A DNA stretch of 64,000 bases from NCBI RefSeq assembly GCF_039654945.1, contig NW_027361819.1, positions 2,728,001 through 2,792,000 of the forward strand, read 5' to 3'. Of the stretch, positions 5,117 through 52,942 are shown piece after piece. The notes under the pieces are model-generated. The model searched no databases and was not told the DNA's origin. It saw only the letters and a program-made list of their open reading frames with translations. The translations under genes and the position numbers were made by a program. This DNA comes from Dendrobates tinctorius. Its lineage: Eukaryota. Each line of letters starts with the position of its first letter. Within the stretch, counting starts at the first letter, position 1.

Positions 5117-5339
5117 GCATATTCCGCTGTACAGCAGACATATTACGAGCAGCCATTAATCCTGGGCACTGAGCAGAGATTTTCCGGGCAGTGCCCATGG
5201 CAGACACAGTGAGGAGGTGGCTGCTGTAGTAAAGGAGCATCACTCCTCCCATCCTCTGTGTCCTTCACATCCTGCATCTGGATGATGACTCTCGGGGCTC
5301 TTCTCCTCAGGTCCTGCTGCTGGGCCCCATCTCCTCATC

Positions 5340-8300
5340 ATGGTGCGCTCCTTATATTACCTGGTGCCAGTCCTGGGGGGCTACGCTGCCACCTCCTATT
5401 ACTTACTGAAGAATCCCCACATCTTGCAGAAGAGGAAGAGACTGGCCTTCCACTGCCGCCATATCTCCCACCGTGGGGGTAAGTCATGTCCCTGTGGTGC
5501 CCAGACCACCCGGCACCCCAACATGTAACCCTTTATTATAGGAGGGATGGGCGCCCACCCTATATTTAGCAGTGTCACTAACACTGGTCAATTTCTGGGC
5601 AAGTTAGGTGACAACCACTGGCGCTGTAATAACACCTGCTGCTGAGGTTGTCAGACACCTTTAACATGCTTCAGAAAAGAAAACGCTGGTCAGGAGTCTG
5701 GGAAAGCTGGGCTGATGTTCACAATGACCTGATTATAATATGCCCCCTGTCCTCCAGGAGCCGGAGAGAAGATTGAAAACACCATGGAAGCATTTGATAA
5801 GTAAGTGGGGGGCAGCATTGTTTTGTGGGAGGGCAACGTTGATCTATGAGGAGCAGCATTGATCTGTAGGGGGCAGCATTGATCTGTGGGGAGCAGTGTT
5901 GATCTGTAGGGAGAGAATTGATCTGTGGGTGGCAGCATTGAACTGTAGGGGGTAGCGTTGATCTGTGGAGAGCAGCGTTGATCTGTGGGTGGGGGATTGA
6001 TCTTTAGGGGGCAGCATTGATCTGTGAGGCCAGTGTTGATCTATGAGGGGCAGCCTTGATCTGTGGGTGGCAGCGTTGATCTGTGGGGCCAGCGTTGATC
6101 TGTGGAGAGCATCGTTGATCTGTAGGTGGAGAATTGATATGTGGGGGACAGCGTTGATCTCTGGAGGGCAGTGTTGATCTCAGGGGCGGGGAATCTGTAA
6201 GGGGCAGCACTGATCTGTGAGCGGGATTAATCTGTGCTGGACAGCGTTGATCTCTGCGGGGCAGCGTTGATCTGTGGGGCAGCGTTGATCTCTGTGGGGC
6301 AGCGTTGATCTGTGGAGGGGAATTGTTGATCTGCGGGGCAGCATTGATCTCTGCGGGGCAGTGTTGATCTGTGGAGGGGAAGTGTTGATCTGTGGGGGCA
6401 GCGTTGATTTGTGGGGAGCAGCGTTGATTTGTGGGGAGCAGCGTTGATTTGTGGGGAGCAGCGTTGATCTGTGGGGCATCGTTGATCTGTGTGGGGTAGC
6501 GTTGATCTGTGTGGGGCAGCGTTGATCTGTGGAGGGGAAGTGTTGATCTGTGCGAGGCAGCATTGATTTGTGGAGGGGAAGTGTTGATCTGTTGGGGCAG
6601 CGTTGATTTGTGGGGAGCAGCGTTGATCTGAGAGGCGGGGAATTGATCTGTGGGGCAGCGTTGATCCCTGCGGGGCAGCGTTGATCTGTGTGGGGCAGCG
6701 TTGATCTGTGGAGGGGAAGTGTTGATCTGTGCGAGGCAGCATTGATTTGTGGAGGGGAAGTGTTGATCTGTGGGGGCAGCGTTGATTTGTGGGGAGCAGC
6801 GTTGATCTGAGAGGCGGGGAATTGATCTGTGGGGCAGCGTTGATCTCTGCGGGGTAGCGTTGATCTGTGGAGGGGAATTGTTGATCTCTGCGGGGCAGCT
6901 TTGATCTGTGTGGGGCAGCGTTGATCTGTGCGAGGCAGCATTGATTTGTGGAGGGGAAGTGTTGATCTGTGGGGGCAGTGTTGATTTGTGGGGAGCAGCG
7001 TTGATCTGAGGGGCGGGGAATTGATCTGCAGGGCAGTGTTGATCCGTGCGGGGCAGCATTGATCTGTGGAGGGGAAGTGTTGATCTGTCTGGGGGGGGGG
7101 GCAGTGTTGTTGTAATTCCAATACCTACTGGACAACCCCTTTAAGTGTTCCTTTTCTTACAGCGCGGTCACCCATCACACTGACCTCCTGGAGTTGGACT
7201 GTCACATGACTAAAGACGGATGCGTTGTGGTGTCACATGATGGCAATTTATTACGGCAAACAGGACACGATGTGAACATAAAGGATGTGACATACGAGGT
7301 AACGGCAGTGACGTGTGTGGATAGAGATATACACACAGTGTAATAAGACGTTCTGAAGGTCTCAGCTTTTTTCCATTTCAATATCCCTGCTGACCTCTCA
7401 CTATCACAGCTGAGGGTTTGTTACACTGTATCTAATCATGTGCAGGATGAACATCTCTGGTGTCCAGAGCGGCGGCCGTGTACTTTATGTGTGTTTTCTG
7501 CCCCAGGAGCTGCCGCCTTATCAGGAACATCTGGAGGTCACCTTCTTCCCAGGTAGGCTGGAGTCGAGGATCGGGTAACCTTCAGGGTGTTGGAGAACTA
7601 TAAGTCCCAGCTTTCCCTCTGACGTTTGTGTCCCAGGTCACATCTCGTCAGGTACAGACCACAGTATCCCTCTGCTGGAGGAGGTCTTCAAGAGATACCC
7701 GGATAAACCCATCAATGTGGAGATCAAGGAGGACAGCGATGACCTTATAAGAAAGGTAACTACTGCTGGGGGTGGGCAGTGCCGCCATGTGCCCCCATGT
7801 ACCGGCCATTTGCTCCCCATGTACTCTCCACTTTCTCCACATGTATCCGCTGCGTGCCCCCCTATGTACCCGTCGTTTTCCCCATGTACCCGCAATTTAC
7901 TCCCTATGTACACGCTGCATGCCCCCATGTACCCGCTGTGTGCCCCCATGTACCCAATTTATGCCCCCATGTACTTACCATGTGCCTGCTGTGTGTCCCC
8001 CATATACACGCTGCATACTCCCATGTACCTGCTGTTTGCCCCATGTACTCACTGTGTGCCCCCCATGTATGTGCCATTTGCCCCGTGTACCCGCTGTTTG
8101 CCCCATGTGCCCGCAGACAGTAATCTCATCATTATATGCAGGTGTCTGAGCTTGTGAAGAAATACCAGCGCATGGAGAGAACCATCTGGGCCAGCACCAG
8201 CGACAAGGTCATGAAGAAATGTCGGAAGGCGGTACGACTACTCTCCTCAGTGATTATTACTACTATCTCATCATCCTCTTGCATTATCCCATAGACTGAC

Positions 8301-11300
8301 ACTACCTCTGACTATTACACTCCCATCCTGCGCTCTACATCTTCTTCATGCTCCTTCTAGTATTACTCCATCCTCCTCCTCAGTACTCAGTTGGTCAGAC
8401 CTCATCTGGAATATTGTGTCCAGTTTTGGGCACCACATTTTAAAAAAGACATCAACAAACTGGAGCAAGTTCAGAAAAGAGCGACCAGAATGGTGACCGG
8501 TCTGCAAACCCTGTCTTATGAGGAAAGGTTGCAGGATTTGGGAATGTTTAGTTTGCAAAAGAGAAGACTGAGAGGAGACTTAATTGCTGTCTACAACTAT
8601 CTAAAGGGCTGTCACATTGTAGAAGGATCAACTTTATTCTCATTTGCACAAGGAAAGACTAGAAGCAATGGGATGAAACTGAATGGGAGGAGACACAGAT
8701 TAGATATTAGAAAAAACTTTTTGACAGTTAGAGTGATCAATGAGTGGAACAGGCTGCCACGAGAAGTGGTGAGTTCTCCTTCAATGGAAGTCTTCAAACA
8801 GAGGCTGGACAGACATCTGACTGGGATGATTTAGCGAATCCTGCTTTGAGCAGGGGGTTGGACCAGATGGCCCAGGAGGTCCCTTCCAACTCTACGATTC
8901 TATGATTCTATGATACTATCCTATCATCTTTTCTAATCATCCTTTCGTCTATTGCTACTACCCCATCACTCTCCTAGTCACCCCTCCTTGGTACTACTAC
9001 TCTCATCCTCCCACCACTTCATCTGACTGTACAATGCCGCCGGTGTCACCTCTCATTCTCCTGGGACCACCACTGATGCTTCCTCATCATTTTCCCTCAG
9101 AACCCAGAGATGCCGTTCATGTTCACCCCCCGCCGGGGCGTCATCCTCCTCCTCCTCTATTACACGGGGCTGTTGCCGTTCGTGGATTTGCCAGAGTCAG
9201 TGGTGGAGACGTACATGCCGTCCCTTATAAACAGGTCAGACTGTGGTATATACAGAGTGCAGGGGGTCTTTGCCGTATTCAGGAGGCGGGGGCTCAGCTC
9301 TATACAGAGTGCAGGGGGGTCTCGGCCATATACAGGGTGTGGGTGGGAGCTCAGCCCTATACAGGGTGCAGAGGGGTCTCGGCCATATACAGGGTGTCGG
9401 TGGGGTCTCGGCCCTATACAGTGTGCAGGGGGTCTTCGCTGTATTCAGGGGGAGGGGGCTCGGCCATATATAGGGTGCAGGGGGTCTCTGCTGTATACAG
9501 GGTGTAGGTGGGGTCTCAGCCCTATACAGGGTGCAGGGGTCTCAGCCGTAAACAGGGTGCAGGGGTTCTCGGCCGTATACAGGGTGTGCAGGGGATCGGC
9601 CATAGACAGGGTGCAGGGGTCTCTGCCGTATACAGGGCGTAGGCAGGGGCTCGGACATATACAGGGTGCAGGGGGTGTCTCTGCTGTATACAGGGCATAG
9701 GCAGGGGCTCGGACATATACAGGGTGCAGGGGGTGTCTCTGCCGTATACAGGGCATAGGCAGGGGCTCGGACATATACAGGGTGCAGGGGGTGTCTCTGC
9801 CGTATACAGGGCATAGGCAGGGGCTCGGACATATACAGGGTGCAGGGGGTGTCTCTGCCGTATACAGGGCATAGGCAGGGGCTCAAACATATACAGGGTG
9901 CAGGGGGTGTCTCTGCCGTATACAGGGCATAGGCAGAGGCTCGAACATATACAGGGTGCAGGGGGTGTCTCTGCCGTATACAGGGCATAGGCAGGGGCTC
10001 GAACATATACAGGGTGCAGGGGGTGTCTCTGCCGTATACAGGGCATAGGCAGGGGCTCTGACATATACAGGGTGCAGGGTGTGGGCTCGGCCCTATACAG
10101 GGTGCAAGGGTTCTCGCCCGTATACAGAGTGTGGGCGGGGGCTCGCCCGTATATACGGTGCAGGGGAATCTCAGCTGAATATAGGCTGCAGGGAGTCTCG
10201 TTTGTATACATGGTGTGCGTGGGGGCTCGGCCCTATACAGGGTGCAGGGGGTCTCGGGTGTATATAGAGTGAAGGGGAATCTCAGCTGAATATAGGCTGC
10301 AGGGGTCTCGTTCATATACGTGGTGTGCGTGGGGGCTCGACCCTATACAGGGTGCAGGGGGGCTCGGCCCTATACAGGGTGTGAGTGGGGGCTTGGCTGT
10401 ATTCAGGGCTCTCACCTCTTCTCTCTCTATAGGACGTATTTTCCCAGTCACTCTCTGATGAGGAGCCGCTTTCTGGTTTATCTCCAGGACAAGTAAGTTC
10501 TTCCCTGTCTCACTTCTTCCAGGGAAACTCCACATTGCACAGTACAGCACGTCATGGGTTAAAGGGAATCTGTCACCCCTGGAGGATTTTGAGCTATTAC
10601 TATGCGCATGCAGGTAATAGAATGGTTAAACCAGTGTTACCTGTCTGCCTCATACCTGCGGTGTAGAGCTTGAGAAATGCAGGTATAATGTCATACAGGA
10701 GCTTCTCACTAAGCGAGAAGATCATCAGAAAGTGAATTTATTTCCATTTTTCAATACAGACAGTGCCTCTCCTCTATTCTATAGAGTCATTACACACAGA
10801 GTGATCTATGTCACGGGTTTATTTCTGGTAATGTTGATGATTACGGCTTACAGCCAATGAGAACCCAAAAGTCATTATCTCAGGAAATTAGAATAATTAA
10901 CAATAAACCCCTGTAAAGGCTCCTAAGTGTTTATAAAGGTCCCTTAAGGTTCTGTCACACTTAGCGATGCACCAGCGATCCCGGCCAGTGATATGACGTG
11001 GTCAGGATCGCTGGTGCATCGCTAAGTAGTCGCTAGTGAGCTGCCACACAGGCAGATCTCACCAGCGACATCGCAGGGGTCTGGGGTCGCTACTTACCTG
11101 TCAGACGAGGCGATCCTGACATCCTCCTGCCCGCGTCCACGCGTCGCTTGTCAGCGCCACAGGAAGCCCAGCAGGAAGTGCCCGACGAGAAACGGCCCAG
11201 GACGTTCTCGCGCGATCAGCGATAACCAGCGGGGGAGCCGGTCGGAGGTAAATATCAGACATAGCGATATTGCTTAGTGTGACAGGCCCTTTAGTCTTTT

Positions 11301-13280
11301 TCAGTAGCTCCACAATCTTGGGGAAGACTGCTGACCTGACAGATGTCCAGAAGGCCATCACTGACACCCTCCAAAATCATGGGGAAGACTGCTGACCTGA
11401 CAGATGTCCAGAAGGCCATCACTGACACCCTCCACAATCATGGGGAAGACTGCTGACCTGACAGATGTCCAGAAGGCAGTCACTGATGCACTCCGCAAGG
11501 AGGAGAAGCCACAAAAGGTCATTGCTAAAGACGCCGGCTGTTCACAGAGTGCTGTATCCGAGAATATTAATGGGAAGTGGAGTGGAAGGAAAAAGTGTGG
11601 TAGAAAAAGGTGCACAAGTCACCGGGAAAACCGCAGCCTGGAAAGGATTGTTAAGAAAAGGCCATTCAGTAATGTGGGGGAGATTCACAAGGAGCGGACT
11701 GCTGCTGGAGTCATTGCTTCACACCACAAACAGACGTCTCCAGGACATGGGCTACAAGTGTCACATTCCTTGTGTCAGCCACTCATGACCAATAGACAAC
11801 GCCAGAAGCATCTTACCTGGGCCAAGGAGAAGAACCGGACTGTGGTCAGTGGTCCCAGAGTCTGGAGGAAGAGTGGAGAGGCCACAATCCAAGCTGCTGG
11901 AGGTCTAGTGTGAAGTCTCCACCATCAGTGATGGTTTGGGGAGCCATGTCATCTGCGGGTGTAGGTCCACTGTGTTTTATCAAGACCAAAGTCAGCGCAG
12001 CCGTCTACCATGACATGTTAGAGCTCTTCATGCTTCCCTCTGCTGACAAGCTTTATGGAGATGGAAATGTCATTCTCCAGCAGGACTTGGCCCCTGTCCA
12101 CACTGCCAAAAGTACCAATACCTGGTGTAAAGACAACAGTATCACTGGGCTGATTGCCAGCAAACTCACCTGACCATAACCCCATAGAAAATCTATGGAG
12201 TATTGTCAAGAGGAAGATGAGAGACAACTGATCCAACAATGCAGACGAGCTGAAGGCTGCTATCAAAGCGACCTGGGCTTCCATAACCCCTCAGCAGTGC
12301 CACAGGCTGATCGCCTCCATGCCACGCCGCATTGATGCAGTAATTGATGCACATGGAGCCCGACCAAGTATTGAGCGCATTTACTGATCACACATTTCAG
12401 ATTTTACAATCATTTTTCAGGCTTGTGTTATAAAGTATTCTAATTTCCTGAGATAATGACTTTTGGGTTCTCATTGGCTGTAAGCCATAATCATCAACAT
12501 TACCAGAAATAAACCGTGAGATAGATCACTCTGTGTGTAATGACTCTATAGAATAGAGGAGAGGCACTGTCTGTATTGAAGAACTGAAATAAATTCACTT
12601 TTAGATGATATTCTCATTTAGAGAGAAGCTCCTGTATGTGTCTGAGACCCCGCACTATAATATTATATTACGTCACACCCTGCGCCCCTTATGTGATGTC
12701 ACCGGTTATAATGACACCATTCGTTTTTCTTACAGACTGATAATGAGGAAAAGTCTATTCCAGCACCTCCAGGCCAGAGGCATCCAGGTACCCGAGCCGT
12801 GTGACACCCGACCCAATCATATGGCATATGTGATAGTCTGCAGACGTCTTATGATGGGTGGGACAGTCTGCAGCGGTCAAATAATGGGTGTGATAGTCTT
12901 CAGTGGTCAGTTAATGGGTATGATAGGCTGCAGACATCTTATGACGGGTAGGACAGTCTGCAGTGGTCAGATAATGGATGTGATAGTCTGCAGCAGTCAT
13001 ATGATGGGTCTGATGGTCTGCAGCGGTCATATGATGGGTGTGAGACTCTGCATACCTACTCTTGTGTCCTCTGTTTCGCCCCCTACAGGTTTACCTATGG
13101 GTACTGAACCAGGACTCTGATTTCCGGCGAGCCTTGGACTGTGGGGTCACCGGGGTTATGACGGATTACCCCTCCAAGCTTCGCACCTTCCTGCAGGAAT
13201 ATGATGGGGAGCAGAGGACTCGGGGGGCAGAGGCCCCGGCCGCCTCGTCAGGAGGGGAGCAGCAGAGGACGCACATGTGA
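5340..13280 (+). CDS. gdpd3: Glycerophosphodiester phosphodiesterase domain-containing protein 3 (lysophospholipase D, GDPD1/3 family), 10 coding exons, 336 aa
   Basis: Exons 5340-5478, 5758-5800, 7163-7298, 7507-7552, 7637-7755, 8142-8231, 9101-9234, 10433-10492, 12736-12787, 13089-13280; all GT-AG, phases consistent, total 1011 nt. Motifs ISHRGGAGEKIENT, LLELDCHMTKDG-VVSHD, INVEIK, VYLWVLN, GVMTDYPSKL. gdpd3 rather than gdpd1 is inferred from synteny with tbx6/ppp4c. Confidence 0.93.
5808..7110. repeat. G-rich ~19-21-bp imperfect minisatellite (GCAGCGTTGATCTGTGGGG) in gdpd3 intron 2
   Basis: TTGATC core repeated dozens of times; explains the long minus-strand PQINAAP ORFs. Confidence 0.92.
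7782..8115. repeat. ~22-bp imperfect minisatellite (CCCCCATGTACCCGCTGTGTG) in gdpd3 intron 5
   Basis: CCCCATGTA core repeated about 14 times. Confidence 0.85.
8385..8914 (+). mobile_element. 5'-truncated CR1 LINE 3' end
   Basis: ORF 8391-8834 reads VRPHLEYCVQFWAP...EWNRLPREVV (CR1 ORF2 C-terminus); ends in the CR1-type (ATTCTATG)n tail at ~8897-8914. Confidence 0.93.
9245..10405. repeat. ~30-bp (59-bp dimer) G-rich minisatellite (TATACAGGGTGCAGGGGGTGTCTCTGCCG...) in gdpd3 intron 7
   Basis: TATACAGGG core repeated throughout; homogeneous dimer block at ~9620-10070. Confidence 0.92.
10696..12634 (+). mobile_element. Tc1-like DNA transposon (defective) in gdpd3 intron 8
   Basis: TA|CAGGAGCTTCTC ... 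GAGAAGCTCCTG|TA termini with ~200-bp inverted repeats; frameshifted transposase pieces (MGKTADLT..., VMVWGAMS, QQDLAPVH). Confidence 0.93.
10947..11290. mobile_element. Harbinger/PIF-like MITE nested in the Tc1
   Basis: Imperfect TIRs AGGTTCTGTCACACTTAGCGAT / ATTGCTTAGTGTGACAGGCCCT flanked by a TTA duplication (10944-10946, 11291-11293). Confidence 0.75.
12831..13045. repeat. 30-bp tandem repeat (TGATAGTCTGCAGCGGTCATATGATGGGTG) in gdpd3 intron 9
   Basis: About 7 imperfect units at 30-bp spacing. Confidence 0.85.
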
Positions 13281-13582: not shown

Positions 13583-16500
13583 TCACACGCCCCCGGAGGT
13601 GGTATGAGGGGGCAGATACCAGGGCGGCGTGCACACCTGATGCAGGAGGGGGGCATGCAGGGTAGAAAAGGGGTAAGTCAGCCTGACTCGCGGAAAGGTC
13701 CAGGAGCCCATAAAATAGGGGGCAACGGGAGGCAAATTGGAGGCCGAGGGAGGAAACGGGGCCAAAGCGGAAGGAGGTGGATGAGCCAATCTGTAAATGA
13801 AGAGGAGCGGTCAGATAGCGGCACGGCAGGCAGGACACGTCGCGTGCAGAGACAACGACCTTACCTGTGACCTGCGGGGCAGGCGCGGGGACTGTAGGCT
13901 GTCACTGACAGCGCAGAGGGGGCTGCCCACATCGGTCTCTGTGTTACGGGGTCCCACTGCACAAGGCAGTCTGTCCTGTGTGCTCGCTCCTCTCTCTCCT
14001 CTGTAGCTTCCCTGTGTGTTATGTCTCTGCCCTTGGCCAGGCTTGGGATGTCTCTGGGACTCTCTTTTCCAGGTGTCTGTCTCTTTTCTCCTTTCTCATC
14101 TCTCTTTTCTGTAACTTCCCTTCTCTCCTCTTCCTCTGCTCCTCTCCTTTCTGCTGATACAAGATGTCTCTCCACGTTCTCATCTACCGGACTCTCCACC
14201 CTGCTGTCTCTCTGAGAGGTTGTCAGCTCCGTTGCGCTCGCTTTATGTCTCTTAATAACTGGAAAAAGATAAAAAAACATAATCGGCGTATATTATATGT
14301 AGCCAAGCGTCCCCTGCAATATTGGGGTTCAACTAAGCTGTAAAGGGCATATATCCACACCCTTACTGATTGTTTCCAATAGACAGAATAGTGAGTGCAG
14401 CTCTGGAGTATAATACAGCATGTAACTCAGGATCTGTAATGTAATGTATGTACACAGTGACTGCACCAGTAGAATAGTGAGTGCAGCTCTGGAGTATAAT
14501 ACAGGAGGTAACTCAGGATCAGTAATGTAATGTATGTACACAGTGACTGCACCAGCAGAATAGTGAGTGCAGCTCTGGAGTATAATACAGGAGGTAACTC
14601 AGGATCAGTAATGTAATGTATGTACACAGTGACTGCACCAGCAGAATAGTGAGTGCAGCTCTGGGGTATAATACAGGATGTAACTCAGGATCAGTAATGT
14701 AATGTATGTACACAGTGACTGCACCAGCAGAATAGTGAGTGCAGCTCTGGAGTATAATACAGCATGTAACTCAGGATCTGTAATGTAATGTATGTACACA
14801 GTGACTGCACCAGCAGAATAGTGAGTGCAGCTCTGGAGTATAATACAGGAGGTAACTCAGGATCAGTAATGTAATGTATGTACACAGTGACTGCACCAGT
14901 AGAATAGTGAGTGCAGCTCTGGGGTATAATACAGGAGGTAACTCAGGATCAGTAATGTAATGTATGTACACAGTGACTGCACCAGCAGAATAGTGAGTGC
15001 AGCTCTGGGATATAATACAGGATGTAACTCAGGATCAGTAATGTAATGTATGTAGACAGTGACTGCACCAGCAGAATAGTGAGCGCAGCTCTGGGATATA
15101 ATACAGGATGTAACTCAGGATCAGTAATGTATGTACACAGTTACTGCACCAGCAGAAGAGTGAGTGCAGCTCTGGAGTATAATACAGGATGTAACTCAGG
15201 ATCAGTAATGTAATGTATGTACACAGTGACTGCACCAGCAGAATAGTGAGTGCAGCTCTGGGGTATAATACAGGATGTAACTCAGGATCAGTAATGTAAT
15301 GTATGTACACAGTGACTGCACCAGCAGAATAATGAGTGCAGCTCTGGAGTATAATACAGGATGTAACTCAGGATCAGTAATGTAGTGTATGTACACAGTG
15401 ACTGCACCAGCAGAATAGTGAGTGCAGCTCTGGGGTATAATACAGGATGTAGCTCAGAATCAGTAATATATGTACTGTGAGAATCATGTGGGAATAGTGG
15501 ATGAGGGCAGGTATATCTCGCCCAGATTCCTTTCCTATGTGGCCTAGTCTGGTCAGTATCGCACCTGCTTGCTAATGAATAATGGGAGGTGGATATAAAA
15601 GGATGCCCGGTGGTTGTGTGAGTGTCTCAGCCTGGGAACACAGAGAGCCTGTCTGTGTGAGAGACACACGTGAGTGAGAGCAGTGCCCACTGCAACTGTG
15701 GTTTGGCTGGACGGGAGAAGCCCGCCAGTTGGTAGTTAGGTTGTACCTTGTTTAGTTAGTGCCGGACAGGCAAGGATTTGTTTTATGTTTTATTTCCTTT
15801 TTGCATTGCTTTCACTATTAATAAACCTGACCCAGGGTCAGTTACACCTGAATCCCAGCTCTGCGCCTGAGTTTCACGCACATGACCTTTGACCCCAGCA
15901 AAGCCGATCCCGGAGTGTTTTATCACAGTACACAGTGACTGCACCAGCAGAATAGTGAGTGCAGCTCTGGAGTATAATACAGGATGTAGCTCAGAATCAG
16001 TAATGTATGTACACAGTGACTGCACCAGCAGAATAGTGAGTGCAGCTCTGGGGTATAATACAGGATGTAACTCAGGAACAGTAATGTAATGTATATACAC
16101 AGTGACTGCACCAGCAGAATAGTGAGTGCAGCTCTGGAGTATAATACAGGATGTAGCTCAGAATCAGTAATGTATGTACACAGTGACTGCACCAGCAGAA
16201 TAGTGAGTGCAGCTCTGGGGTATAATACAGGATGTAACTCAGGAACAGTAATGTAATGTATGTACACAGTGACTGCACCAGCAGAATAGTGAGTGCAGCT
16301 CTGGAGTATAATACAGGATGTAGCTCAGAATCAGTAATGTATGTACACAGTGACTGCACCAGCAGAATAGTGAGTGCAGCTCTGGGGTATAATACAGGAT
16401 GTAACTCAGGATCAGTAATGTGATGTATGTACACAGTGACTGCACCAGCAGAATAGTGAGTGCAGCTCTGGGGTATAATACAGGATATAACTCAGGATCA

Positions 16501-19500
16501 GTAATGTAATGTACGTACACAGTGACTGCACCAGCAGAATAGTGAGTGCAGCTCTGGGATATAATACAGGATGTAACTCAGGATCAGTAATGTAATGTAT
16601 GTACACAGTGACTGCACCAGCAGAATAGTGAGTGCAGCTCTGGGGTATAATACAGGATGTAACTCAGGATCAGTAATGTATGTACACAGTGACTGCACCA
16701 GTAGAATAGTGAGTGCAGCTCTGGGGTATAATACAGGATGTAACTCAGGATCAGTAATGTATGTACACAGTGACTGCACCAGTAGAATAGTGAGTGCAGC
16801 TCTGGGGTATAATACAGGAGGTAACTCCGGATCAGTAATGTAATGTATGTACACAGTGACTGCACCAGCAGAATAGTGAATGCAGCTCTGGAGTATAATA
16901 CAGGATGTAACTCAGGATCAGTAATGTAATGTATGTACACAGTGACTGCACCAGCAGAATAGTGAGTGCAGCTCTGGAGTATAATACAGGATGTAGCTCA
17001 GAATCAGTAATGTATGTACACAGTGACTGCACCAGCAGAATAGTGAGTGCAGCTCTGGGGTATAATACAGGATGTAACTCAGGAACAGTAATGTAATGTA
17101 TATACACAGTGACTGCACCAGCAGAATAGTGAGTGCAGCTCTGGAGTATAATACAGGATGTAGCTCAGAATCAGTAATGTATGTACACAGTGACTGCACC
17201 AGCAGAATAGTGAGTGCAGCTCTGGAGTATAATACAGGATGTAGCTCAGAATCAGTAATGTATGTACACAGTGACTGCACCAGCAGAATAGTGAGTGCAG
17301 CTCTGGGGTATAATACAGGATGTAACTCAGGAACAGTAATGTAATGTATATACACAGTGACTGCACCAGCAGAATAGTGAGTACAGCTCTGGAGTATAAT
17401 ACAGGATGTAGCTCAGAATCAGTAATGTAATGTATGTACACCGTGACTGCACCAGCAGAATAGTGAGTGCAGCTCTGGAGTATAATACAGGATGTAGCTC
17501 AGAATCAGTAATGTATGTACACAGTGACTACACTAGCAGAATAGTGAGTGCAGCTGTGAAGTTTGTACGGTAATACAGGATGTGACTTAGCATGAGTTTT
17601 AAGTTTAAAAAAAGGGAAGTATGTTGTAATGTGCGGACATTTAGTGCAGATGATACCGTGCTCTCGGACTGACCTGGGGACCCATCTCCATCCAGTCCCG
17701 GTCTGTGGTGCCTCTTTCTTGGATTGCTGCTAAAATATAGATTTATTTTTACTGTTATGTTTTATAACGTTTCTCCTTAATAAGCGATTCCTCAATCTAA
17801 TCATTATAGGGGCAGTCACATTAGGGGTCAGACACCACCCAGAGACTGATATTTTTGGGGGGCCAGTCTGTTTCACCTTATTCTGCCAGTAGGGGGCGAT
17901 ACTTACTTTTCCTGCTGACTCTTGAAATATTTAATTCCTTTTGCAAATGGATTTTCTTCTATTTTCAGCAAGGAGAGCTGCAGAGAGGAAGAATGGGTGA
18001 GAGGAGGAGCCAGTGGTAGTGGAAGGAGACAGTGACAGAGGGAGGAGCCATGAAACATACATTTTATAGGGAGCCCAATGCTCTTAAAGGGTTTATTCCC
18101 ATTGTAATGAACGGGTGTTACCAAATAGTAAATACAAACAATTTTGCAATTTACAGCTTATTAAAATTTCCAGCCGTTCTGGAGATATGAACACTTTAGT
18201 TTATACCTCGCTACTATGGAGACGACCACCGATTGTGCACAAGCTCTTTTATATTGAGCTTGTAAGTGCTGCTTTAAAGCTGGCCAGCATTGCTGGAGTG
18301 AGTTGTTACCTCCTATTCTCGGCAAGCTTCAGCACAGTGCATACAAGCTTTATAGCAGCGGTGGTCGGTCACCTAGGCAACAAACTGTAAACAAAAAGAA
18401 AAGTGTTAATATCTCATGAATGGCTGCAGATTTTAACAAACAGTAAATTGCAAAAGTGCTTGGTTTAACAAGAACTATCTGACAATATCCGTCTATGGAG
18501 ACACAAATAATGTCTTAAAGGGGGTGTCCATACACAAGCAATGAACCCTACTGACCTTGGGATTCTGGTAGCTGGTGACCGCTATGAAGGACGTCTCCGG
18601 GAAAGAGATGGAGGAGGCTGGCCGGGCATGGGGTCCATTATTGGAGGTGGGGATGATGTATAATCGCAGGTAGTAACGGTGCATGGACTGCAGGACGATC
18701 TGAGCAGAAAGTATCATTAGAGATCATGAGGGTACAAGGATCGTCCTGGTAGGGGGCTCCCTGCCACCACAATAATTCTCAATTTTTCATGATTGTACGA
18801 CACTAGGTGGCGCCACCCTCGTAGGTTCTATGGACACATCTCCGCCATACCTGTCCTCCCTGGGTCAGGGTATTGTTGGTCAGTCGGATCCTGTTGAAGC
18901 AGATGGGTCTCTCCATCCATCGGTGACCTGGGGCCGGGGATTCGGGGTGGAGGTAGAGACGGGTGGGGGGTCCTGGCTCTGCCCTGCCACTCATGCTCCA
19001 GGTCCGGTCACGCCACTTGTAGCGGTTCTCACCGTCAGGGACGGCCTGGACACAGAGACAGTAGAGACCGTGCGGGTCCAGGCCGGACAAAGAGACAGAA
19101 AACTCTGGGAACATCCGCCTGTGGGCACAAGAAGGACAGTCAGACTCATCCCCCGAACTGGGAGGCTTCACCCCACGGGTTCCTGTCAGATGCAGAGTGA
19201 CAGCAATTGTTGGCCGCCATTACTGTGGGTTGTAGTGAGTGCGGCCCACATACTGGGGTTCTGGCATTCTGTTCATGAACCAGGAGGCTCAGGATGAACA
19301 TCACACACTTACCGCCCATTTTTGGTCAGTATCATTTCTGTCCCCACGGCATTAAACTTCTCCCATAATTCCCTGTTTTCCAATTGGGCAGAGATTTGTG
19401 GAGCGGTGGCGGCTGGCGACCCGGGAGGAGAGCAGTATGGCGGAGAGAGATAGTATCCAGCGGGATGAGGGAACTTCGTGCCTGAATGAAGCAGAAGGGA

Positions 19501-21591
19501 CGTCCGATGTCACTAATGGCGTCGCCCGAAACACCCGGCTAAATATTCACACAAGGGGAAAGTGACCTGAGGTTACCGCAATTCACACTCCGCTGCCATG
19601 TCTGCCCAGGAATCTACCAGCCCAGAGCTGCGCACTACAACTCCCAGCATAGCACACCTGTCAGGCGTTGTAGTGACAGCTGGACAGAAGACACCTGCGG
19701 ACAGCCGGGAGGGAACACATATGGCGGCTTTACAGCTTCTCAAATGATTCACAAAATCCCAAGCCAACACTAAGTAGACCCCACACTACAAGGCGGAGGG
19801 GCAGAGAATTGTATTTGTCACAAAATCTCATTTTCATCCATCGCTGTGATACAGATCAGCCCTGACCAAAAAGAAGATGTTGCCCCTAGCAACCAATCAC
19901 AGAGCGGCTATCATTCTGTAAACAGCTCTGGTGAAATGAAAGCTATGCTGTGATTGGTCACGAAGGACAGCTCCGCGTTTAGTCAGTTTTCATGAGTTAG
20001 GCCCAAAAGATGTCTGCCCTGACGTCTGAGGTAAAGAAGTATATACACAGGGCATACAGTATATATACAGACTATGCCACATTCTGTGTTATCTGTGGTG
20101 TTACTTAGGACTGCAGGTGACATCTACTCCATTATCTGTACTCAGAGAGTTATCACTGTGTTATCTGTGGTGTTACATAGGACTGCAGGTGACATCTACT
20201 ACATTATCTGTACTCAGAGAGTTATCACTGTGTTATCTGTGGTGTTACATAGGACTGCAGGTGACATCTACTACATTATCTGTACTCACAGAGCTATCAC
20301 TGTATTATCTGTGGTGTTACATAGGACTGCAGGTGACATCTACTACCTTATCTGTACTCAGAGAGTTATCACTGTGTTATCTGTGGTGTTGCATAGGACT
20401 GCAGGTGACATCTACTACATTATCTGTACTCAGAGAGTTATCACTGTGTTATCTGTGGTGTTACATAGGACTGCAGGTGACATCTACTACATTATCTGTA
20501 CTCAGAGAGTTATCACTGTGTTATCTGTGGTGTTACATAGGACTGCAGGTGACATCTACTACATTATCTGTACTCAGAGAGTTATCACTGTGTTATCTGT
20601 GGTGTTACATAGGACTGCAGGTGACATCTACTACATTATCTGTACTCACAGAGCTATCACTGTATTATCTGTGGTGTTACATAGGACTGCAGGTGACATC
20701 TACTACCTTATCTGCACTCAGAGAGTTATCACTGTGTCATCTGTGGTGTTGCATAGGACTGCAGGTGACATCTACTACATTATCTGTACTCAGGCATTTA
20801 TCATTGTGTTATCTGTAATGTTACATAGGACTGCAGGTGACATCTGCTACATTATCTGTACTCAGTAATAAATCACTGTGTTATCTGTGGTGTTACATAG
20901 GACTGCAGGTGACATCTACTACACTATCTGTACTCAGTAATAAATCACTGTTATCTGTGGTGTTACATAGGACTGCAGGTGACATCTACTACACTATCTG
21001 TACTCAGTAATAAATCACTGTTATCTGTGGTGTTACATAGGACTGCAGGTGACATCTACTACATTATCTGTACTCACAGAGCTATCACTGTATTATCTGT
21101 GGTGTTACATAGGACTGCAGGTGACATCTACTACCTTATCTGCACTCAGAGAGTTATCACTGTGTCATCTGTGGTGTTGCATAGGACTGCAGGTGACATC
21201 TACTACATTATCTGTACTCAGGCATTTATCATTGTGTTATCTGTAATGTTACATAGGACTGCAGGTGACATCTGCTACATTATCTGTACTCAGTAATAAA
21301 TCACTGTGTTATCTGTGGTGTTACATAGGACTGCAGGTGACATCTACTACACTATCTGTACTCAGTAATAAATCACTGTTATCTGTGGTGTTACATAGGA
21401 CTGCAGGTGACATCTACTACACTATCTGTACTCGGTGATCAGAGAACGCCTCCATACAGTTCTCTCGTGCCACTCCCTATACACACACAGCGCACACATA
21501 TACCGTGACGGTGTCCGGGGTACTCACCCATGTCTCTCCTGAGTTGGGGTGGGGTGGGCAGGCAGCAGCCCAGTATTCCAGTTGAGTGCAT
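13583..21591 (-). CDS. tbx6r: Divergent Tbx6-related T-box transcription factor (probable tbx6r), 8 coding exons, ~457 aa
   Basis: Exons (minus) 21591-21528, 19481-19313, 19118-18851, 18699-18556, 17977-17907, 17729-17674, 14258-13865, 13790-13583; all GT-AG, phases consistent, 1374 nt with no internal stop. T-box: [28 protein letters not shown]...RYKW...SGRAEP...LTNNTL...SMHRY...[14 protein letters not shown]...NPFAKG. T-box exons are secure; first and last exons less so. Symbol is by analogy to the Xenopus Tbx6-related gene. Confidence 0.85.
14383..17585. repeat. 86-bp (81-bp variant) dispersed satellite array in intron 6 of the Tbx6-related gene
   Basis: Unit AGAATAGTGAGTGCAGCTCTGGAGTATAATACAGGATGTAACTCAGGATCAGTAATGTAATGTATGTACACAGTGACTGCACCAGC; interrupted by a solo LTR. 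Confidence 0.96.
15476..15927 (+). mobile_element. Solo LTR (452 bp, Gypsy-like)
   Basis: TGTGA...TCACA termini, 4-bp target duplication GTAC (15472-75, 15928-31), internal TATAAAA (~15594) and AATAAA (15820-25). Confidence 0.88.
18085..18517. mobile_element. Degenerate palindromic MITE (TTAA-flanked, Kolobok/T2-like)
   Basis: Long imperfect inverted arms (TTTTGCAATTTAC / GTAAATTGCAAAA; GACCACCG / CGGTGGTC); starts TTAAAGGG. Confidence 0.6.
20083..21433. repeat. 72-bp satellite (TTATCTGTGGTGTTACATAGGACTGCAGGTGACATCTACTACATTATCTGTACTCAGAGAGTTATCACTGTG) in intron 1 of the Tbx6-related gene
   Basis: 72-bp period (20161 to 20521 = 5 units), about 19 units. Confidence 0.95.
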
Positions 21592-21626
21592 GATGTGATC
21601 TGACACCCAGGACCTGGGGGGAGAGC

Positions 21627-21632
21627 TTTATA
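21627..21632 (-). promoter_or_regulatory. Candidate TATA box of the Tbx6-related gene
   Basis: TATAAA on minus strand ~36 nt upstream of the ATG at 21591; a T-box half-site (TAACACCT) lies at 21868-21875. Confidence 0.45.
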
Positions 21633-30431: not shown

Positions 30432-32057
<1,626 letters not shown>

Positions 32058-32395
32058 TAACTCAGGATCAGTAATGTATGTACACAGTGACTGCACCAGC
32101 AGAATAGTGAGTGCAGCTCTGGAGAATAACACAGGATGTAACTCAGGATCAGTAATGTCATGTATGTACACAGTGACTGCACCAGCAGAATAGTGAGTGC
32201 AGCTCTGGAGAATAATGCAGGATGTAACTCAGGATCAGTAATGTCATGTATGTACACAGTGAATGGACCAGCAGTATAGTGAGTGCAGCTCTGGGGTATA
32301 ATACAGGAGGTAACTCAGGATCAGTAATGTATGTACACAGTGACTGCACCAGCAGAACTGCAACTCTGGAGTATAATACAGGATGTAACTCAGAA

Positions 32396-33376
<981 letters not shown>

Positions 33377-42545: not shown

Positions 42546-43016
42546 GCTTCTTCTGTATCTAGTCCTTTCATGCGTGATACTGTATCAGAGCCTTGTCTAT
42601 GTGATATATGACATCCCCATGTATCAGACATGTAGTAAAGGCATCGTCTTCTCTTCCATGTGGTGGGACCTTCTATGGAAGGACAGATCTGCTCATTACA
42701 ACCTTCTTGCTTCTTCCTCCTCCTTCTTTCCCTGAATTCTGCATTTCCTGACAACTGGTCAAACTGAGGCACAGGACGGCCATAAAGACCCTTAATAAAG
42801 TTTAATTCAGTTCTAATGTGTGAAGAGACCTCCTCCTGCTGCCCCCTCTCACCTAGCAGGAGGGTCCCACATCAAAAGGTGCAGGGCGGACTTTAAGGAA
42901 GAGTCAATGTGTTATCTTCACCCCAGTGACTGGCCCCATCATCACAAGGACCTTCTCCTCTTCAGCCTCACTTCTTGTAGGATCTTCATGAAGCTCATAC
43001 TCTGATCTTACACACC

Positions 43017-46000
43017 ATGTATCACACAGACATATTCCAGCAATACGGACCGCCCTATGCTGTGAGACCACCAACCTACCCATCAGCCAGTGGACACCAT
43101 GAACCCTACAGGTACCCAGGTACGTAAGACTATGCTTGGTTGGGTAGATGTTGGAGGCATCTCTTGAGGTTCCTTGTGTCATCATGTCCAGGAGAGATCT
43201 ATAATTGATCATGTGTCCTGCATTTTGTATCATACGTTCATATCGCAGTAGATATCAGGTGAGCTTCTGAAGGGCAAAGGAAAGTCTTTGGACCCCATGA
43301 TACCTCATCTATAGATCTAATGTCAACCTCTATGTTTCATTAGAAGCAAAAATTGTGTTCAGTCCAATTCCTCCTGAATCAGATCACCAGTTTTACAACC
43401 TTGGGATGGAACACATTCCACCCTCTCTAGAAATGCTTTTTGGTCCAACAACTTGTGGCTCTGATACATTTGAATGTTGATCTCCTGACATAAATGGTGG
43501 TTTTGGTGACTCCTAAGCTTCTAATGTGGTTCTGTGCAAGTCCAATTTATTTCTAAGGTTCTGGACTAATGTATCCGAGATTGTGTTTATGTTCGTTACA
43601 AGTTCTGATGTCCTGCTTTTTTTTTTTTTTTCTGTAACTGTGACTTCAGGATAGTATTGAGGTTCTGGAAGTCTAGACTGTTTTGGTCCAGCAGAGTAGA
43701 GGCATTCTGGTCTTCTGGTGATTGTGTAGGTCCAATACAATCATGAATTTCTGAGGTTTCGTGATCTTTGACGGTCCAGCATGACAATGAATGTCTAGTA
43801 TAGTTGTGGTTCTGCTGGCCATGGTTCTGCAAGTCCAGTGCTCTTAGGATTTTATGTGTCCAGTATAGTGATGTTTCTAGAGTCATGGGGCTATGCAGGT
43901 CCAGTCTAGAAATAAGGTTCAAGTTTAATCTCAGATTTATTGGTCCAGCATGGCAATAAGTTTCTCGGTTCTCGTGGGATACAGTATTGTGGTGTTTCTG
44001 GTGGCCTGGTGACTCTGCAAGTTCAGGGTAGCAGTGAGGTTCTGGTGGATCCACAACTTTATGGATCATGTACAATGATGGTGCTGCTGTCCTGGGACTA
44101 TGCAATCTTGATTTGGAGGTTCTAGAGCAGTGTTTCCCAAACTCCAGTCCTCACGGCCCCCAACCTGTCATGTTTTCAGGATTTCCTTAGTATTTCACAG
44201 GTGATGGAAGTATCAACAAGGCATCAGGAATTCTCTCATGTGTAACACTATGGAAATCCTGAAAACGACCTGTTGGGGTCCGCGAGGACTGGAGTTTGGG
44301 AACCACTGTTCTAGAGTTTCCCCAACGACATGTTAGTCCAGTATTTTCCTGGGGTCCAATAGAATGGTGGTTCTATTGGCCTTGGGTCTCTTCCAACCCA
44401 AGGCTATTCTAATACTTTTAGGTTTTTATGGGTCCAGTTTCAGTATAGTTCTGATCATCCTCACTTCCTGAGGTATACTGTACATTCTGAGGTTCTGGCC
44501 ACAAATTCTCCATTAATTGAGGTTTCCAGTATTTGTGTTGCATGTCCTGAGGACATGTCTTGTGGGTGCTGGTATTTATTGAAGATCTGGTCCAAGCTTC
44601 TGTTGATCTGACATTGTCGGTTCCCGTGATATTCTGGACATCTGGTCTACCTTAGATTTATATGGGAACAGGAGGAGCTGTCCCATCTCGTTACCATTAC
44701 CCTCTGCAGGGGTCCAATTAGCAGGACATGGCGGCCATTTAGCACTTACTTGTCAAGCAGAGCAGCTTGTGAGTGACCTGAAGCCACTGAGGCGGATGCA
44801 GCCGGACCACTAGACCTAACACTCTACATTTTCCCCTAAAATACAAAAAGCCCCAGTAACCGGCTCATCCATCTACACCTTTGGCCTGGGACAGCTCATA
44901 GAATCCCACGATTTGCAGTATCACTTCTACGCCGATGACACGCAGATCTACCTATCTGGACCTTACCTCACCTATAGACCAAAATCCCACAATGTCTGTC
45001 TGCTATTTCATCTTTCTTTTCTGCTCGCTTTCTTAAACTGAACATAGACAAAACAGAATTCATCATCTTGCCCCCATCTCACTCTACCCCTCCACCAGAC
45101 CTATCCATCAATGTCAATGGCTGCTTTCTTTCCCCAGTCCCCCACGCTCGGTGCCTTGGGGTGATCCTCGACTCTGCCCTCTCTTTCAAACCACATATCC
45201 AAGCCCTCCCCTCCTCCTGCAGCCTCAAACTCAAAAATATTTCCCGGATCTGCATGTTCTTTGACTATGAAACCACAAAAACACTAGTGCACGCTCTTAT
45301 CTCCCGCCTCGACTACTGCAACCTCCTACTCTCTGGCCTCCCCTCTAGCACCACTCCAGTCCATCCTACGCTCTGCTGCCCGACTAATCCACCTGTCTCC
45401 CTGCTATTCCCCAGCCTCCCCCCTAGGCCAGGCCCTTCACTGGCTTCCTATTACCCAGAGGCTCCAGTTCAAAACCCTAACTATGACATAGAAAGCCATC
45501 CACAACCTGTCTCCCCCCATACATCTGTGACATGGTCTCCGGGGACCAACCCGCACCCAACCTTCGATCATCTCAAGATCTCCTTCTCTACTCCCCCTTA
45601 TCTCTTCTTCCCACAACCGCATACAAGACTTCTCCCGTGCTTCCCCCATACGCTGGCACTCTGCCGCAACACATCAGACTCTCACCAACAACGGAAACCA
45701 TCAAGAAGAACCTGAAGACCCACCTGTTCCGACAAGCCTACAGCCTGCAATGACCCTCGGTCTACTGAACCACCGCAGGACCTGCTCTACCCTCTCCTAC
45801 TGTATCTTCTCCCATCCCTGTAGACTGTGAGCCCTCGCAGGCAGGGTCCCCTCTCCTCCTGTACTTGTGTGTCCCTAGTCTTACACATGTTTATTGTACT
45901 TGTCTATATTTCCCCTTTTTTCATTTGTAAAGCGCCATGGAATAAATGGCGCTATATAAATGCATAATAATCCAGGTCCTTAAACGATAATTCAGCCCTC

Positions 46001-49000
46001 TTGTGAAACAATGTGTCTCCCGAACATTAGTGGACATCCCCAGGACAGGTGTGGGGGATATTACCATTCCGTTACATTTACTGCTTCCTTCCCTACAGAA
46101 CTTGAGATTCCGACCAGTCAGCGATATGACAGCCTCTTTACTGCACTGGATACCTCACAAAGGATTCTTGGAGCTGCCCCCCTCACACCCCTCTCCTTGC
46201 CCCCAGGTCCCGCCCTGGGATTTGGCCAGCCGCAGCCCCCATGTGAGGCACCCCAACTTCCCGGGGATGTAAAGATGACCCTGGAAAACCGAGATCTCTG
46301 GAAAGAGTTCCACACCATAGGAACCGAAATGATCATCACAAAGTCTGGGAGGTGAGGAAAATAGGAAGGGTGGTGCGAACAAGGGATGTGCAAGAGGATC
46401 ATGCCAAAACAAGTCAGGGGGCTTTACTAGGATATCCCAAAAACCCTTTACAGCAGATGGAAGGATTGCACCATCCCCCTCCCCCCCAAAAAAACTCAGT
46501 CTCCTTATCCTCCATGTTTCTTCATCTTGTCCATTGTATCATTCACCGTGTTTCTTTATCCTCTCCTCATCTTCCATCTTGTCTATCTCTTGATATTGTC
46601 CCTGATTTCACCTCATCCTCCATCTAGTCCCTTTCCTCATCCTCCTTCATCTTCTCCTTTTCCTCCATCCAGCTTCTTGTCCTTGATGTTCTTACTTTCC
46701 ATATTCTCCATCATCCTTCAGTCTCTCCTCATCCTCCATCCGATCCCTTTTCTCAGTCTTCTTCTTGTCCTTCTCCACATACTTCATCTTCTCGTTTCTC
46801 ATTAATCTACCTTCATCCTTCCCCTACCCTCAACATCTACCTTCGTCTCCCTCCCCTCATCCACCATCTTGTCCCTCTCTTTGTCCTCACCATCTCCCCA
46901 ATCTTCTTTTATCTTGTCACCCTTTTCTCTCCATCTATTGCCATCTTCCTTCATCTTGTTTTTTAATCATTCTTTCCTTCTCCTGTTCCTCCATCTTGTG
47001 CTACTCATTATCCTTTATCTTGTCCTTCTCCTCATGCTTCATCCTTTTTTTTTTTTATTCTCCATCTACCTTCATCCTCCATCTTATTCCATGCCTCATA
47101 CTCCGTCTTCTTGTCCTTGTCCTCATGCTCCATCTTCCTACATTTCGTCCCTCTTACCCCCGATCTTTTTTCCCCACCCATCTTCTCCTTCACCCCATCC
47201 TCCATTTTTCTTCATCTTTCGTCACTTGTAGGAGGATGTTTCCTCAGTGTAAAGTTAGCATCACCGGCCTTGATCCAGATGGTAAATACGTCCTTCTTGC
47301 TGACATCGTCCCGGTGGACAATTCCCGATACAAGTGGCAGGAAGATCACTGGGAGCCAAGCGGAAGAGCCGAACCGAGGTTACCCGAGAGAGTCTACATC
47401 CACCCCGATTCTCCAGCACCTGGATCCCACTGGATGAAGCAGCCAATCTCCTTCCACAAGATAAAGCTCACCAACAATACACTGGACCAGATGGGTCATG
47501 TGAGTAGAAGACATGGCAGCTGTCGGTGTAGTCTCCAGTATGACCATCACCAGTCCACCCATCATGGGAGGATTACTTTTACAATCTTTTTACCCCACAG
47601 ATTATCCTGCACTCCATGCATCGGTACCAGCCCCGCTTCCATATTGTCCGAGCCCAGGATGTATTTAGCCGCAGATGGGGTGGCTGCTCCTCCTTCACTT
47701 TTCCAGAGACCATGTTCCTGACTGTGACTGCGTACCAGAATGAGAAGGTCGGTAAAAGAAGGGTTATATGCCATAGAGTGCGATCGTCGTCAGGACCTTA
47801 AGTGGGAATCATGATGTAATATCTTATCCCTCGCAGATAACACAGCTGAAGATCCAGACAAATCCGTTTGCAAAAGGTTTCCGAGAGGATGGACTCAAAA
47901 ATAAGAGGTGGGGGGAATATATATGGTGGCGGGAGAGGGTATTTTCAGGTAAAGAGCCATGTATCCATGAGACAGGAGCGATGGACCAGAAACACAAGTC
48001 GAGGCTTATGGCATGTAGACCAGAGATTATGGAGCAATCTTATTGTTTACAGAGCAAAGGTAAAGCGTCGGGTGGTTTTGAGTCCAGTTCACACACTACT
48101 CAACAGTGAGATTGCAAAACCAGGAAGGAAAGTTTGTGAATTGACGGCAATCAGAGGACAGAGACATTACTGATCTGCAAATGATGAAAAATGGAAACTC
48201 TCACAACCTCTGGCCTTCTTCCTTCTGGAATCTGAGCCACGTGTGGAAATCCCAGCATTTCCAGCCTCAGGTGCTATTGCCGAGGTCATTAATTGCATCT
48301 GAGGAAGGTTCTGCTGCTGAATGCACTTAAGGCAAATCATCAAAATCCGCTGCTGGCAGCTCCTGTGTAATCACCGACCAATGACGTGCCAGATGTGCTC
48401 TATGGGAGACAAGTCTGGAGACGCTGCAGCCACGGGAGCAGGATTAGGCCATGCAGGTGGCTCATAGTACGAGGAACATGCAGTTTGAGGTTATGTGGAA
48501 AATGGCACCTGGGACACTTTGATTTGACGGTGGAACCAGTGCCACAGCCATTTCTCCAAGGTAACACAGCTGGTAGTGCATCAGGAGTGAAGATTAGAGG
48601 GGTTCGGCCACAGGAAGTTATGTCACCCCCTCACCATAACCTCGGGAGTAGAACCAGAGTGACGTTCCCTCGTGAAGGACTCTTTATGGTGTTGTCCACT
48701 TGGTCTCCAGCTCTCACTGCATCCAGGACAGAAGCAGGACTCATCGCTGAGGAAAGACTTCTGTGCTGGCCTCCACTGCCATGTTGCTCTGCACCAATGT
48801 GGCCTTTGAGAACGGTGGGACATCTTTGGTTGGCGATTATCCAAGAACTGCCGGCAGCGGATCCGGGTGATGTGCCCAAATGTGTTCAGTTGCAGAACCT
48901 TCCTCAGACGACCATTAATGACCTCAATAGCAGGCGAGGACGGACAGATGTTGTGAAAGTTTTGTTTCCAACATTTACAGATCAGCGATGTCTCTGTCCT

Positions 49001-50243: not shown

Positions 50244-50300
50244 TCGGACAACCTACAGAATGCAGACTCCCAAACGACAGGTGGAGAAGGTCTGGTGCGT

Positions 50301-52872: not shown

Positions 52873-52942
52873 CACAGCTTCCAGCATACGGTACAGATCA
52901 CAGCAAGCCTTTAGGTTTCCATTTTTTTAATCTTTTTCTTGT

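Follow-up and report, generated by a model that had tools for sequence, protein, structure and literature searches.

The question raised by a 64,000-nt stretch of the Dendrobates tinctorius genome (contig NW_027361819.1, positions 2,728,001–2,792,000, forward strand; hereafter "the window," in whose positions all coordinates are given unless another sequence is named) is which T-box gene stands head to head with tbx6, and whether it is a working gene or the remains of a duplicate. Six-frame reading and tblastn placed two T-box loci in the window, one at ~17.9–19.5 kb on the minus strand and one, tbx6, at 46–48 kb on the plus strand. We conclude, with a probability of roughly 0.93, that the minus-strand locus is the tbx6r ("T-box 6 related") orthologue of D. 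tinctorius, a strongly diverged inverted paralogue of tbx6 lying between tbx6 and a gdpd3-like gene, and that it encodes a T-box transcription factor of 457 residues, in which a short conserved N-terminal exon is followed by a complete T-domain, a charged region that varies and a tail rich in Pro. Xenopus Tbx6r, or Xtbx6r, was reportedly treated as early as 2006 by Yabe and colleagues. In Xenopus laevis, the protein has 449 residues encoded by 8 coding exons, a T-domain 53% identical to that of Tbx6 and no homology to it outside that domain (Callery, Thomsen & Smith, 2010, PMC2877776).

Splice-site reading resolves the gene (13583–21591, minus strand) into eight coding exons with AG/GT at every intron and compatible phases (Table 1). 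The open reading frame (ORF) totals 1374 nt, i.e., 457 codons plus TGA, of which exon 1 provides 21 codons and one base (the G of a split codon); the long ORFs inside introns 1 and 6 are artefacts of the repeats that occupy them. The Pfam T-box profile (PF00907) matches exon 2 (E 4.5e-6), exon 3 (E 5.3e-24) and exon 4 (E 9.9e-11), and the T-domain is complete: exons 2–4 span positions 2–164 of the 182 in the profile and exon 5 adds the NPFAKG end. The solved domains of TBX5, TBX3 and T match exon 3 with E values from 1e-24 to 1e-19, and a Pfam search found no second domain in the product.

Nearly everything that an initial annotation of this DNA had claimed about the two T-box genes survived closer reading. 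It had described an intact 8-exon ORF, and all exons are open and bounded by AG/GT, while a RefSeq protein matches exons 3–8 and the last part of exon 2 residue for residue. It had reported that the T-box exons mirror those of tbx6 (268/268, 144/147 and 71/71 nt, with the same phases), as exon reading confirmed, and that the T-domains share ~54% identity (97/179), for which our exon-by-exon sum gives 15/23 + 1/1 + 50/89 + 22/49 + 9/16 = 97/178, again 54%. The signatures that it listed as common to both genes (RYKW, SGRAEP, SPAPG and LTNNTL) do occur in both; in our alignment RYKW and LTNNTL are common to Tbx6, Tbx16 and MGA, and missing from the TBX4/5/20/omb rows. Its view that the N- and C-termini are unrelated also holds, in that exons 1, 6, 7 and 8 and the N-terminal part of exon 2 find nothing in the tbx6 region but a 10-residue chance match (E 0.087). 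Finally, the head-to-head arrangement that it described recurs in two other frogs. In Hymenochirus, tbx6r (194649–209417, minus strand) and TBX6 (219905–223487, plus strand) stand head to head 10.5 kb apart, with a GDPD gene (identified by Pfam GDPD in both frogs) tail to tail with tbx6r, and in Engystomops the genes ppp4c, tbx6, tbx6r and GDPD follow one another in the order and on the strands seen in the window.

The identity of the gene emerges from its relatives. When exon 3 alone was searched against a library of 1.84 billion proteins, four proteins proved 81–93% identical, all of them from frogs, and a word search with the best of these as query recovered intact orthologues in ~25 frog species, from pipids to dendrobatids. 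We then placed the protein in a maximum-likelihood tree of 71 T-domains (LG+C20; support given as ultrafast bootstrap/Shimodaira–Hasegawa-like approximate likelihood ratio test), where, as in the profiles described below, the window's gene was represented by its RefSeq protein (P0174, i.e., exons 3–8 and the end of exon 2). One clade (100/99) unites the window's protein with 19 others from frogs, X. laevis Tbx6r among them; a member of this frog clade, P0184, belongs to a 90% cluster that includes NP_001090543.1 ("T-box 6 related L homeolog") and BAF37265.1 ("Xtbx6r"). Separate clades hold Tbx6 (98/99), VegT/Tbx16/TBX6L (100/98; frog VegT-like proteins, caecilian, bird and turtle TBX6L, and fish tbx16) and fish TBX6L (100/100), and the MGA row stands alone. 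Identities of the T-domain agree with this placement, at 81% to X. laevis Tbx6r and 52–54% to Tbx6, 51% to VegT-like, 50% to MGA and 51% to TBX5. In the present alignment, X. laevis Tbx6r and Tbx6 share 53% of their T-domain, the published figure (PMC2877776).

Outside the T-domain, the kinship is real and remote. Compared pairwise with X. laevis Tbx6r, the window's C-terminal region gives weak BLASTP matches (E 0.009, at the end of exon 7, and 2.8). Because pairwise BLASTP of exons 1 and 8 against the same protein was not significant, profiles were compared: the C-terminal regions of 11 neobatrachian Tbx6r proteins (the window's first) and of 3 pipid ones align end to end over 203 colinear columns (hhalign 99.5%, E 4.6e-23). 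Resemblance to Xenopus tbx6r, as the initial annotation had suggested, is therefore borne out both by the clade and by the homology of the C-terminal region to that of pipid Tbx6r, and its remark that the gene was possibly not new is answered by membership in a published gene family.

A set of substitutions marks the family as a whole. Five T-domain positions are changed, all toward the end of the domain, in exons 4 and 5: the P of YQPR becomes L, the I and T of ITxLKI become L (M in lungfish) and S, and the F and R of GFR become I and K. The changes are present in all 25 rows of the Tbx6r-type clade (which extends beyond frogs, see below), at positions where the 46 remaining rows of the 71-T-domain alignment show no variation. 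Searched as motifs, the five occur in 41/41 clade proteins and 0/334 others, 253 of the latter having NPFAKGFR. We take these positions to correspond to P181, I222, T223, F236 and R237 of TBX5 (numbered with G80 in AGRRMFP), the last of which is the site of a Holt–Oram mutation.

The gene is present in RefSeq under another identity. XP_073403427.1 from D. tinctorius is identical to exons 3–8 and the last seven codons of exon 2 (exon 3 matching its residues 9–97 exactly), and the junctions abut as predicted; its name is "MAX gene-associated protein-like." As this model begins at the internal Met of MILTKNG in exon 2, exon 1 and most of exon 2 are absent from it. Exon 1 is nevertheless supported by cross-species conservation of its sequence: 15/21 residues are identical at the corresponding site of the Engystomops locus, and the motif M[HN]S..CL..RR[DE]MG is common to tbx6r of Dendropsophus, Nanorana, Spea, X. 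laevis and X. tropicalis. The Engystomops model itself (XP_071978093.1, "partial"; L003 10001–61981) has its first exon ~45 kb upstream, such that its range covers the entire tbx6 gene, and the true exon 1 (MHSTGIVGYCLPSAPDPRRDM) lies at 55705–55767 of our Engystomops sequence (L003, Engystomops pustulosus CM082090.1). The RefSeq "MAX gene-associated protein-like" gene is tbx6r, misnamed and N-terminally truncated, a known kind of gene and not a new one. Frog orthologues are likewise named VegT-like, TBX6L-like, TBX6-like or uncharacterized in databases, and the expectation of poor annotation in this lineage was thus well placed. For this genome, the correction is that the name is wrong and that exon 1 and most of exon 2 have to be added to the model; the orthologues, in ~25 frog genomes, go under five or more different misleading names, and these will introduce errors into orthology tables and into the single-cell annotation of frog embryos.

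Is the gene under selection, as the initial annotation proposed? We estimated the ratio of non-synonymous to synonymous substitution rates (dN/dS; Nei–Gojobori, with counts pooled over exon-by-exon codon alignments) against Engystomops, which was chosen because synonymous sites were saturated against Hymenochirus (T-domain proportions of non-synonymous and synonymous differences, 0.125 and 0.76). With a dS of 0.64, dN/dS was 0.26 overall, 0.098 for exons 2–5 (the T-domain) and 0.066 for exon 3, and 0.39 for exons 6–8 (0.35 for exon 7 and 0.31 for exon 8). None of these values is near 1, and the codon alignments show the whole frame to be under purifying selection, strongest in the T-domain. 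As for transcription, two public runs (X1 and X2) contain 0.79 and 0.74 of the sampled words of exons 7–8, where a spliced copy (i.e., one lacking the 74-bp intron) could contain at most 0.84. Contigs from public runs were also placed on 17600–20080, a span that avoids both long tandem arrays. In a 400-nt contig from run X3, the match to exon 6 reaches position 17674, where that exon ends, and the contig continues with the initial 30 bases of exon 7 in reverse complement, the 3.4-kb intron 6 having been removed exactly as predicted; the other contigs of RNA-like runs on this span are repeat-derived pieces. Use of the exon 6–7 junction in a public contig of guessed RNA nature indicates that tbx6r is expressed. 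Upstream of the ATG, a TATAAA box may serve as core promoter (a candidate picked out by sequence reading): the block TCTCCTCCC.CTGTATAAAGC and the stretch from there down to the ATG are kept in Engystomops, with the TATAAA box, the ATG context and the GTGAGT donor all conserved.

We propose that a local inverted duplication of tbx6 gave rise to tbx6r, because the two genes adjoin, share exon sizes and phases, and are co-expressed in Xenopus. [quoted passage not shown] By extension, the D. tinctorius protein would bind T-box sites through its T-domain and act through a C-terminal region of its own; it would share its expression in those two tissues with tbx6, would be required for the same two kinds of mesoderm and for neural crest, and would induce FGF8 and neural markers of anterior type, not mesoderm.

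Several observations weigh against this account. First, intermediate frogs were needed to link exons 1 and 8 to their X. laevis counterparts. Second, the clade has a long stem (0.44) and in the free tree is sister to Tbx6, Tbx16 and MGA together, outside Tbx6; under constraint, union with Tbx6 costs 1.5 log-likelihood units (approximately unbiased [AU] test, p 0.39) and union with the Tbx16 group 1.9 (p 0.40), such that sequence alone does not discriminate between tbx6 and tbx16 as the parent and neither is rejected. Third, RNA support is thin, consisting of one junction in one contig from a run whose RNA nature is only guessed: of the predicted junctions that the initial annotation had wanted checked in RNA, the one between exons 6 and 7 is seen, and exons 2–5 are without contigs in the RNA-like runs, although the filter drops contigs that resemble conserved genes. 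Fourth, with five otherwise invariant residues changed, DNA binding may differ from that of Tbx6. Fifth, the function suggested for D. tinctorius is extrapolated wholly from Xenopus. The initial annotation's claim of an old local inverted duplication is supported apart from one step: the gene is old, given its orthologues in ~25 frog species, and lies inverted beside tbx6, while its descent from tbx6 is a presumption that its position favours and that the AU tests leave on a par with the other parentage. The 2010 authors could not name the parent of Tbx6r from sequence either (PMC2877776).

The alternative that survives best accepts the locus as a true tbx6r orthologue and holds that the gene was copied from tbx16, or from a whole-genome-duplication paralogue, and was later placed beside tbx6. 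The free tree and the AU tests are compatible with such a history, as is the absence of any remaining nucleotide or non-T-box similarity to tbx6. Still, we consider it unlikely, because it leaves adjacency to tbx6 to be explained in three frog lineages (Hymenochirus, Engystomops and the window's) and the consecutive RefSeq accessions of both genes in lungfish, a caecilian and a salamander, along with exon sizes and phases that are those of tbx6. Expression argues in the same direction, since in Xenopus the pattern of Tbx6r resembles that of Tbx6 and not that of Tbx16 (PMC2877776).

It is very improbable, in turn, that the locus belongs to another T-box group, i.e., that it is MGA-like, VegT/Tbx16-like or TBX6L-like. 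This is what the RefSeq names of the product and its orthologues imply, and the AU test does not reject union with Tbx16/VegT/TBX6L, yet VegT/Tbx16/TBX6L, fish TBX6L and MGA are all separate from the window's protein in the tree, and its T-domain is about as far from VegT-like proteins and MGA as from TBX5. The canonical YQPR and GFR residues are changed, contrary to membership in VegT/Tbx16/TBX6L; a 457-residue product with T-box introns and a single Pfam domain also speaks against such an assignment, as does a gene that adjoins tbx6 and is not at the vegt or mga locus. That tbx6r is a decaying tbx6-derived pseudogene, or a gene model existing on paper only, is largely refuted and hardly credible, for although its T-domain is very divergent and departs from the rest at five invariant residues, repeats fill introns 1 and 6, RNA evidence is sparse and the RefSeq model is truncated and oddly named, all eight exons are open with intact splice sites, dN/dS is far from neutral at the dS observed, intact orthologues persist from pipids to dendrobatids, an exon 6–7 junction is present in a contig, and the TATA box and exon 1 are conserved.

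We return, then, to tbx6r as an inverted paralogue of tbx6, and to its age. The 2010 description regarded Tbx6r as new to Xenopus or to amphibians, an example of a T-box gene that arose late and in one lineage (PMC2877776), and no report of Tbx6r outside Xenopus was found in the searchable literature. In our tree, however, the frog Tbx6r proteins are joined (100/100) by others from three caecilians, the salamander Pleurodeles and the lungfish Protopterus. RefSeq accessions of the Tbx6r-type protein and TBX6 are consecutive in lungfish, the caecilian Geotrypetes and Pleurodeles; in Protopterus and Pleurodeles both proteins map to one chromosome, and in Pleurodeles the GenBank locus tags of the two are 003739 and 003742. 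Outside frogs, too, the genes are apparently neighbours, consecutive accessions being a sign of proximity rather than a measured distance. Neither the exon-3 library search nor the word search returned a protein of the Tbx6r type from amniotes, ray-finned fish or coelacanth. As the same type of T-domain apparently lies next to tbx6 in caecilians, a salamander and lungfish, the duplication would predate the lungfish–tetrapod split. It is likely, in our view, that tbx6r is an ancient inverted tandem paralogue of tbx6 that was present in the lungfish–tetrapod ancestor, was kept in lungfish, caecilians, salamanders and frogs, and was lost in amniotes. The frog C-terminal region has no detectable homology to that of the caecilian, salamander and lungfish members (hhalign 0.5%), so that the effector portion of this old gene may have been built anew in frogs. 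If this is true, tbx6r is an old sarcopterygian gene with fixed T-domain changes and a frog-specific effector region, whose ancestral role and loss in amniotes can be addressed in lungfish, salamander and caecilian material. The locus itself is of modest interest; the greater age of the family is the part worth pursuing.

In the surroundings of tbx6r, the last exon of the gdpd3-like gene ends ~300 bp from the tbx6r stop, and ~21 kb of repeats and transposons separate the tbx6r ATG (21591) from the conserved 5' end of tbx6. Non-coding comparison of this interval with Engystomops recovered two promoter-proximal blocks (21592–21933, and the tbx6 5' block, 93% identical in Engystomops) and a shared 36-bp satellite only. 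This 36-bp minisatellite occupies 24487–25541, ~3 kb upstream of tbx6r, and in Engystomops a related ~9-kb array (L003 ~43800–53000) stands at the equivalent site between tbx6r and tbx6; it may be positionally conserved, or may be a satellite common in hyloid frogs. Immediately upstream of the tbx6 5' block is a 32-bp tandem array of ~98 copies (39417–42524). The 86-bp minisatellite family of intron 6 is also found at 27325–28071, 29671–30431, 32056–32393, 35726–36452 and 52079–52540, i.e., at least five other sites in the window, in both orientations, and gives rise to spurious long ORFs in several frames. ORFs of Tc1/mariner-type transposases, mostly broken, are located in the gdpd–tbx6r and tbx6r–tbx6 intervals (11404–12173, 28465–29487, 30770–31838, 32414–33079 and 34319–35124), and two reverse-transcriptase-like fragments of one family are found at 26289–27011 (minus strand) and 44978–45712 (plus strand). 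The ppp4c-like gene is very compact both here and in Engystomops, at ~1.9 kb for ~300 codons, with short introns.

In Hymenochirus boettgeri (JAACNH010000298.1), an extra, diverged and inverted tbx6-like copy (L002 4519–8237, minus strand) lies between tbx6r and tbx6. It is 46–73% identical to the TBX6 of that species, in a sequence (L002) that contains 7216 N, and represents either a lineage-specific duplication or an assembly artefact. A further T-box-like piece, to which the same two alternatives apply, is present at L001 18558–19102, within the range of the Hymenochirus tbx6r gene. By tblastn, no third tbx6-like copy was found in the D. tinctorius window.

Table 1. Features of tbx6r and its neighbourhood in the D. 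tinctorius window.
Feature	Position	Strand	Remarks
tbx6r exon 1, coding part	21528..21591	-	64 nt; ATG at 21591; donor GTGAGT
tbx6r exon 2	19313..19481	-	169 nt; Pro-rich N-terminal part, then T-domain start (ends TKNG)
tbx6r exon 3	18851..19118	-	268 nt; T-domain core
tbx6r exon 4	18556..18699	-	144 nt; T-domain; Pro-to-Leu change in YQPR motif
tbx6r exon 5	17907..17977	-	71 nt; T-domain end, altered relative to the usual sequence
tbx6r exon 6	17674..17729	-	56 nt; basic linker (PRKRHHRP...)
tbx6r exon 7	13865..14258	-	394 nt; variable E/R/K-rich stretch, then conserved WDP.TQRP.W ... YSP..CP.GH block
tbx6r exon 8	13583..13790	-	208 nt including TGA at 13583-13585; Pro-rich tail
TATAAA box (candidate core promoter)	21627..21632	-	~36-41 nt upstream of tbx6r ATG; sequence reading
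72-bp tandem array, 18.8 copies	20084..21433		most of tbx6r intron 1; Tandem Repeats Finder
86-bp minisatellite, 37 copies	14384..17562		in tbx6r intron 6; Tandem Repeats Finder
GDPD-domain gene (gdpd3-like)	5336..13280	+	tail to tail with tbx6r; tblastx to Engystomops GDPD gene
tbx6	42716..50290	+	head to head with tbx6r; tblastn, exon reading, tblastx to Engystomops tbx6 region
tbx6, 5' block	42716..42926	+	
tbx6, T-box exon	46070..46351	+	
tbx6, T-box exon	47232..47499	+	268 nt
tbx6, T-box exon	47601..47747	+	147 nt
tbx6, T-box exon	47837..47907	+	71 nt
tbx6, later exons	to ~50290	+	
ppp4c-like phosphatase gene	53814..55675	-	downstream of tbx6; tblastx to Engystomops Metallophos gene

How does the D. 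tinctorius gene compare with the T-box genes already known? It is closest to Xenopus tbx6r, with which it shares a clade (100/99), 81% of the T-domain, eight coding exons and nearly the same length (457 vs. 449 residues), a T-domain 53–54% identical to that of its own Tbx6 with nothing in common outside it, the same N-terminal exon motif, a homologous C-terminal region and a position adjoining tbx6 (as seen in the pipid Hymenochirus); it differs in that the charged middle and the tail of the D. tinctorius protein have diverged so far that pairwise BLAST barely detects them. Tbx6 resembles it in the RYKW and LTNNTL signatures and in T-box exon sizes and phases, and is adjacent and inverted, but shares only 54% of the T-domain, has unrelated N- and C-termini and retains the five invariant positions at which tbx6r is changed (YQPR P to L, IT to LS and GFR to GIK). 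In Xenopus the two are co-expressed, the induction by Tbx6r being neural and that by Tbx6 mesodermal (PMC2877776). VegT, Tbx16, amniote TBX6L and fish tbx6l belong, like tbx6r, to the broad Tbx6/16 subfamily, yet they form clades of their own, reside at other loci and retain the canonical YQPR, ITKLKI and GFR. MGA, whose name the RefSeq model borrows, also has a T-domain of the Tbx6/16 subfamily; however, MGA proteins carry a bHLH-Zip region as well and are very long, the sampled MGA-type protein being ~2900 residues long, whereas tbx6r comprises 457 codons and no further domain, and the MGA T-box is without introns (PMC2877776), whereas that of tbx6r is interrupted by three.

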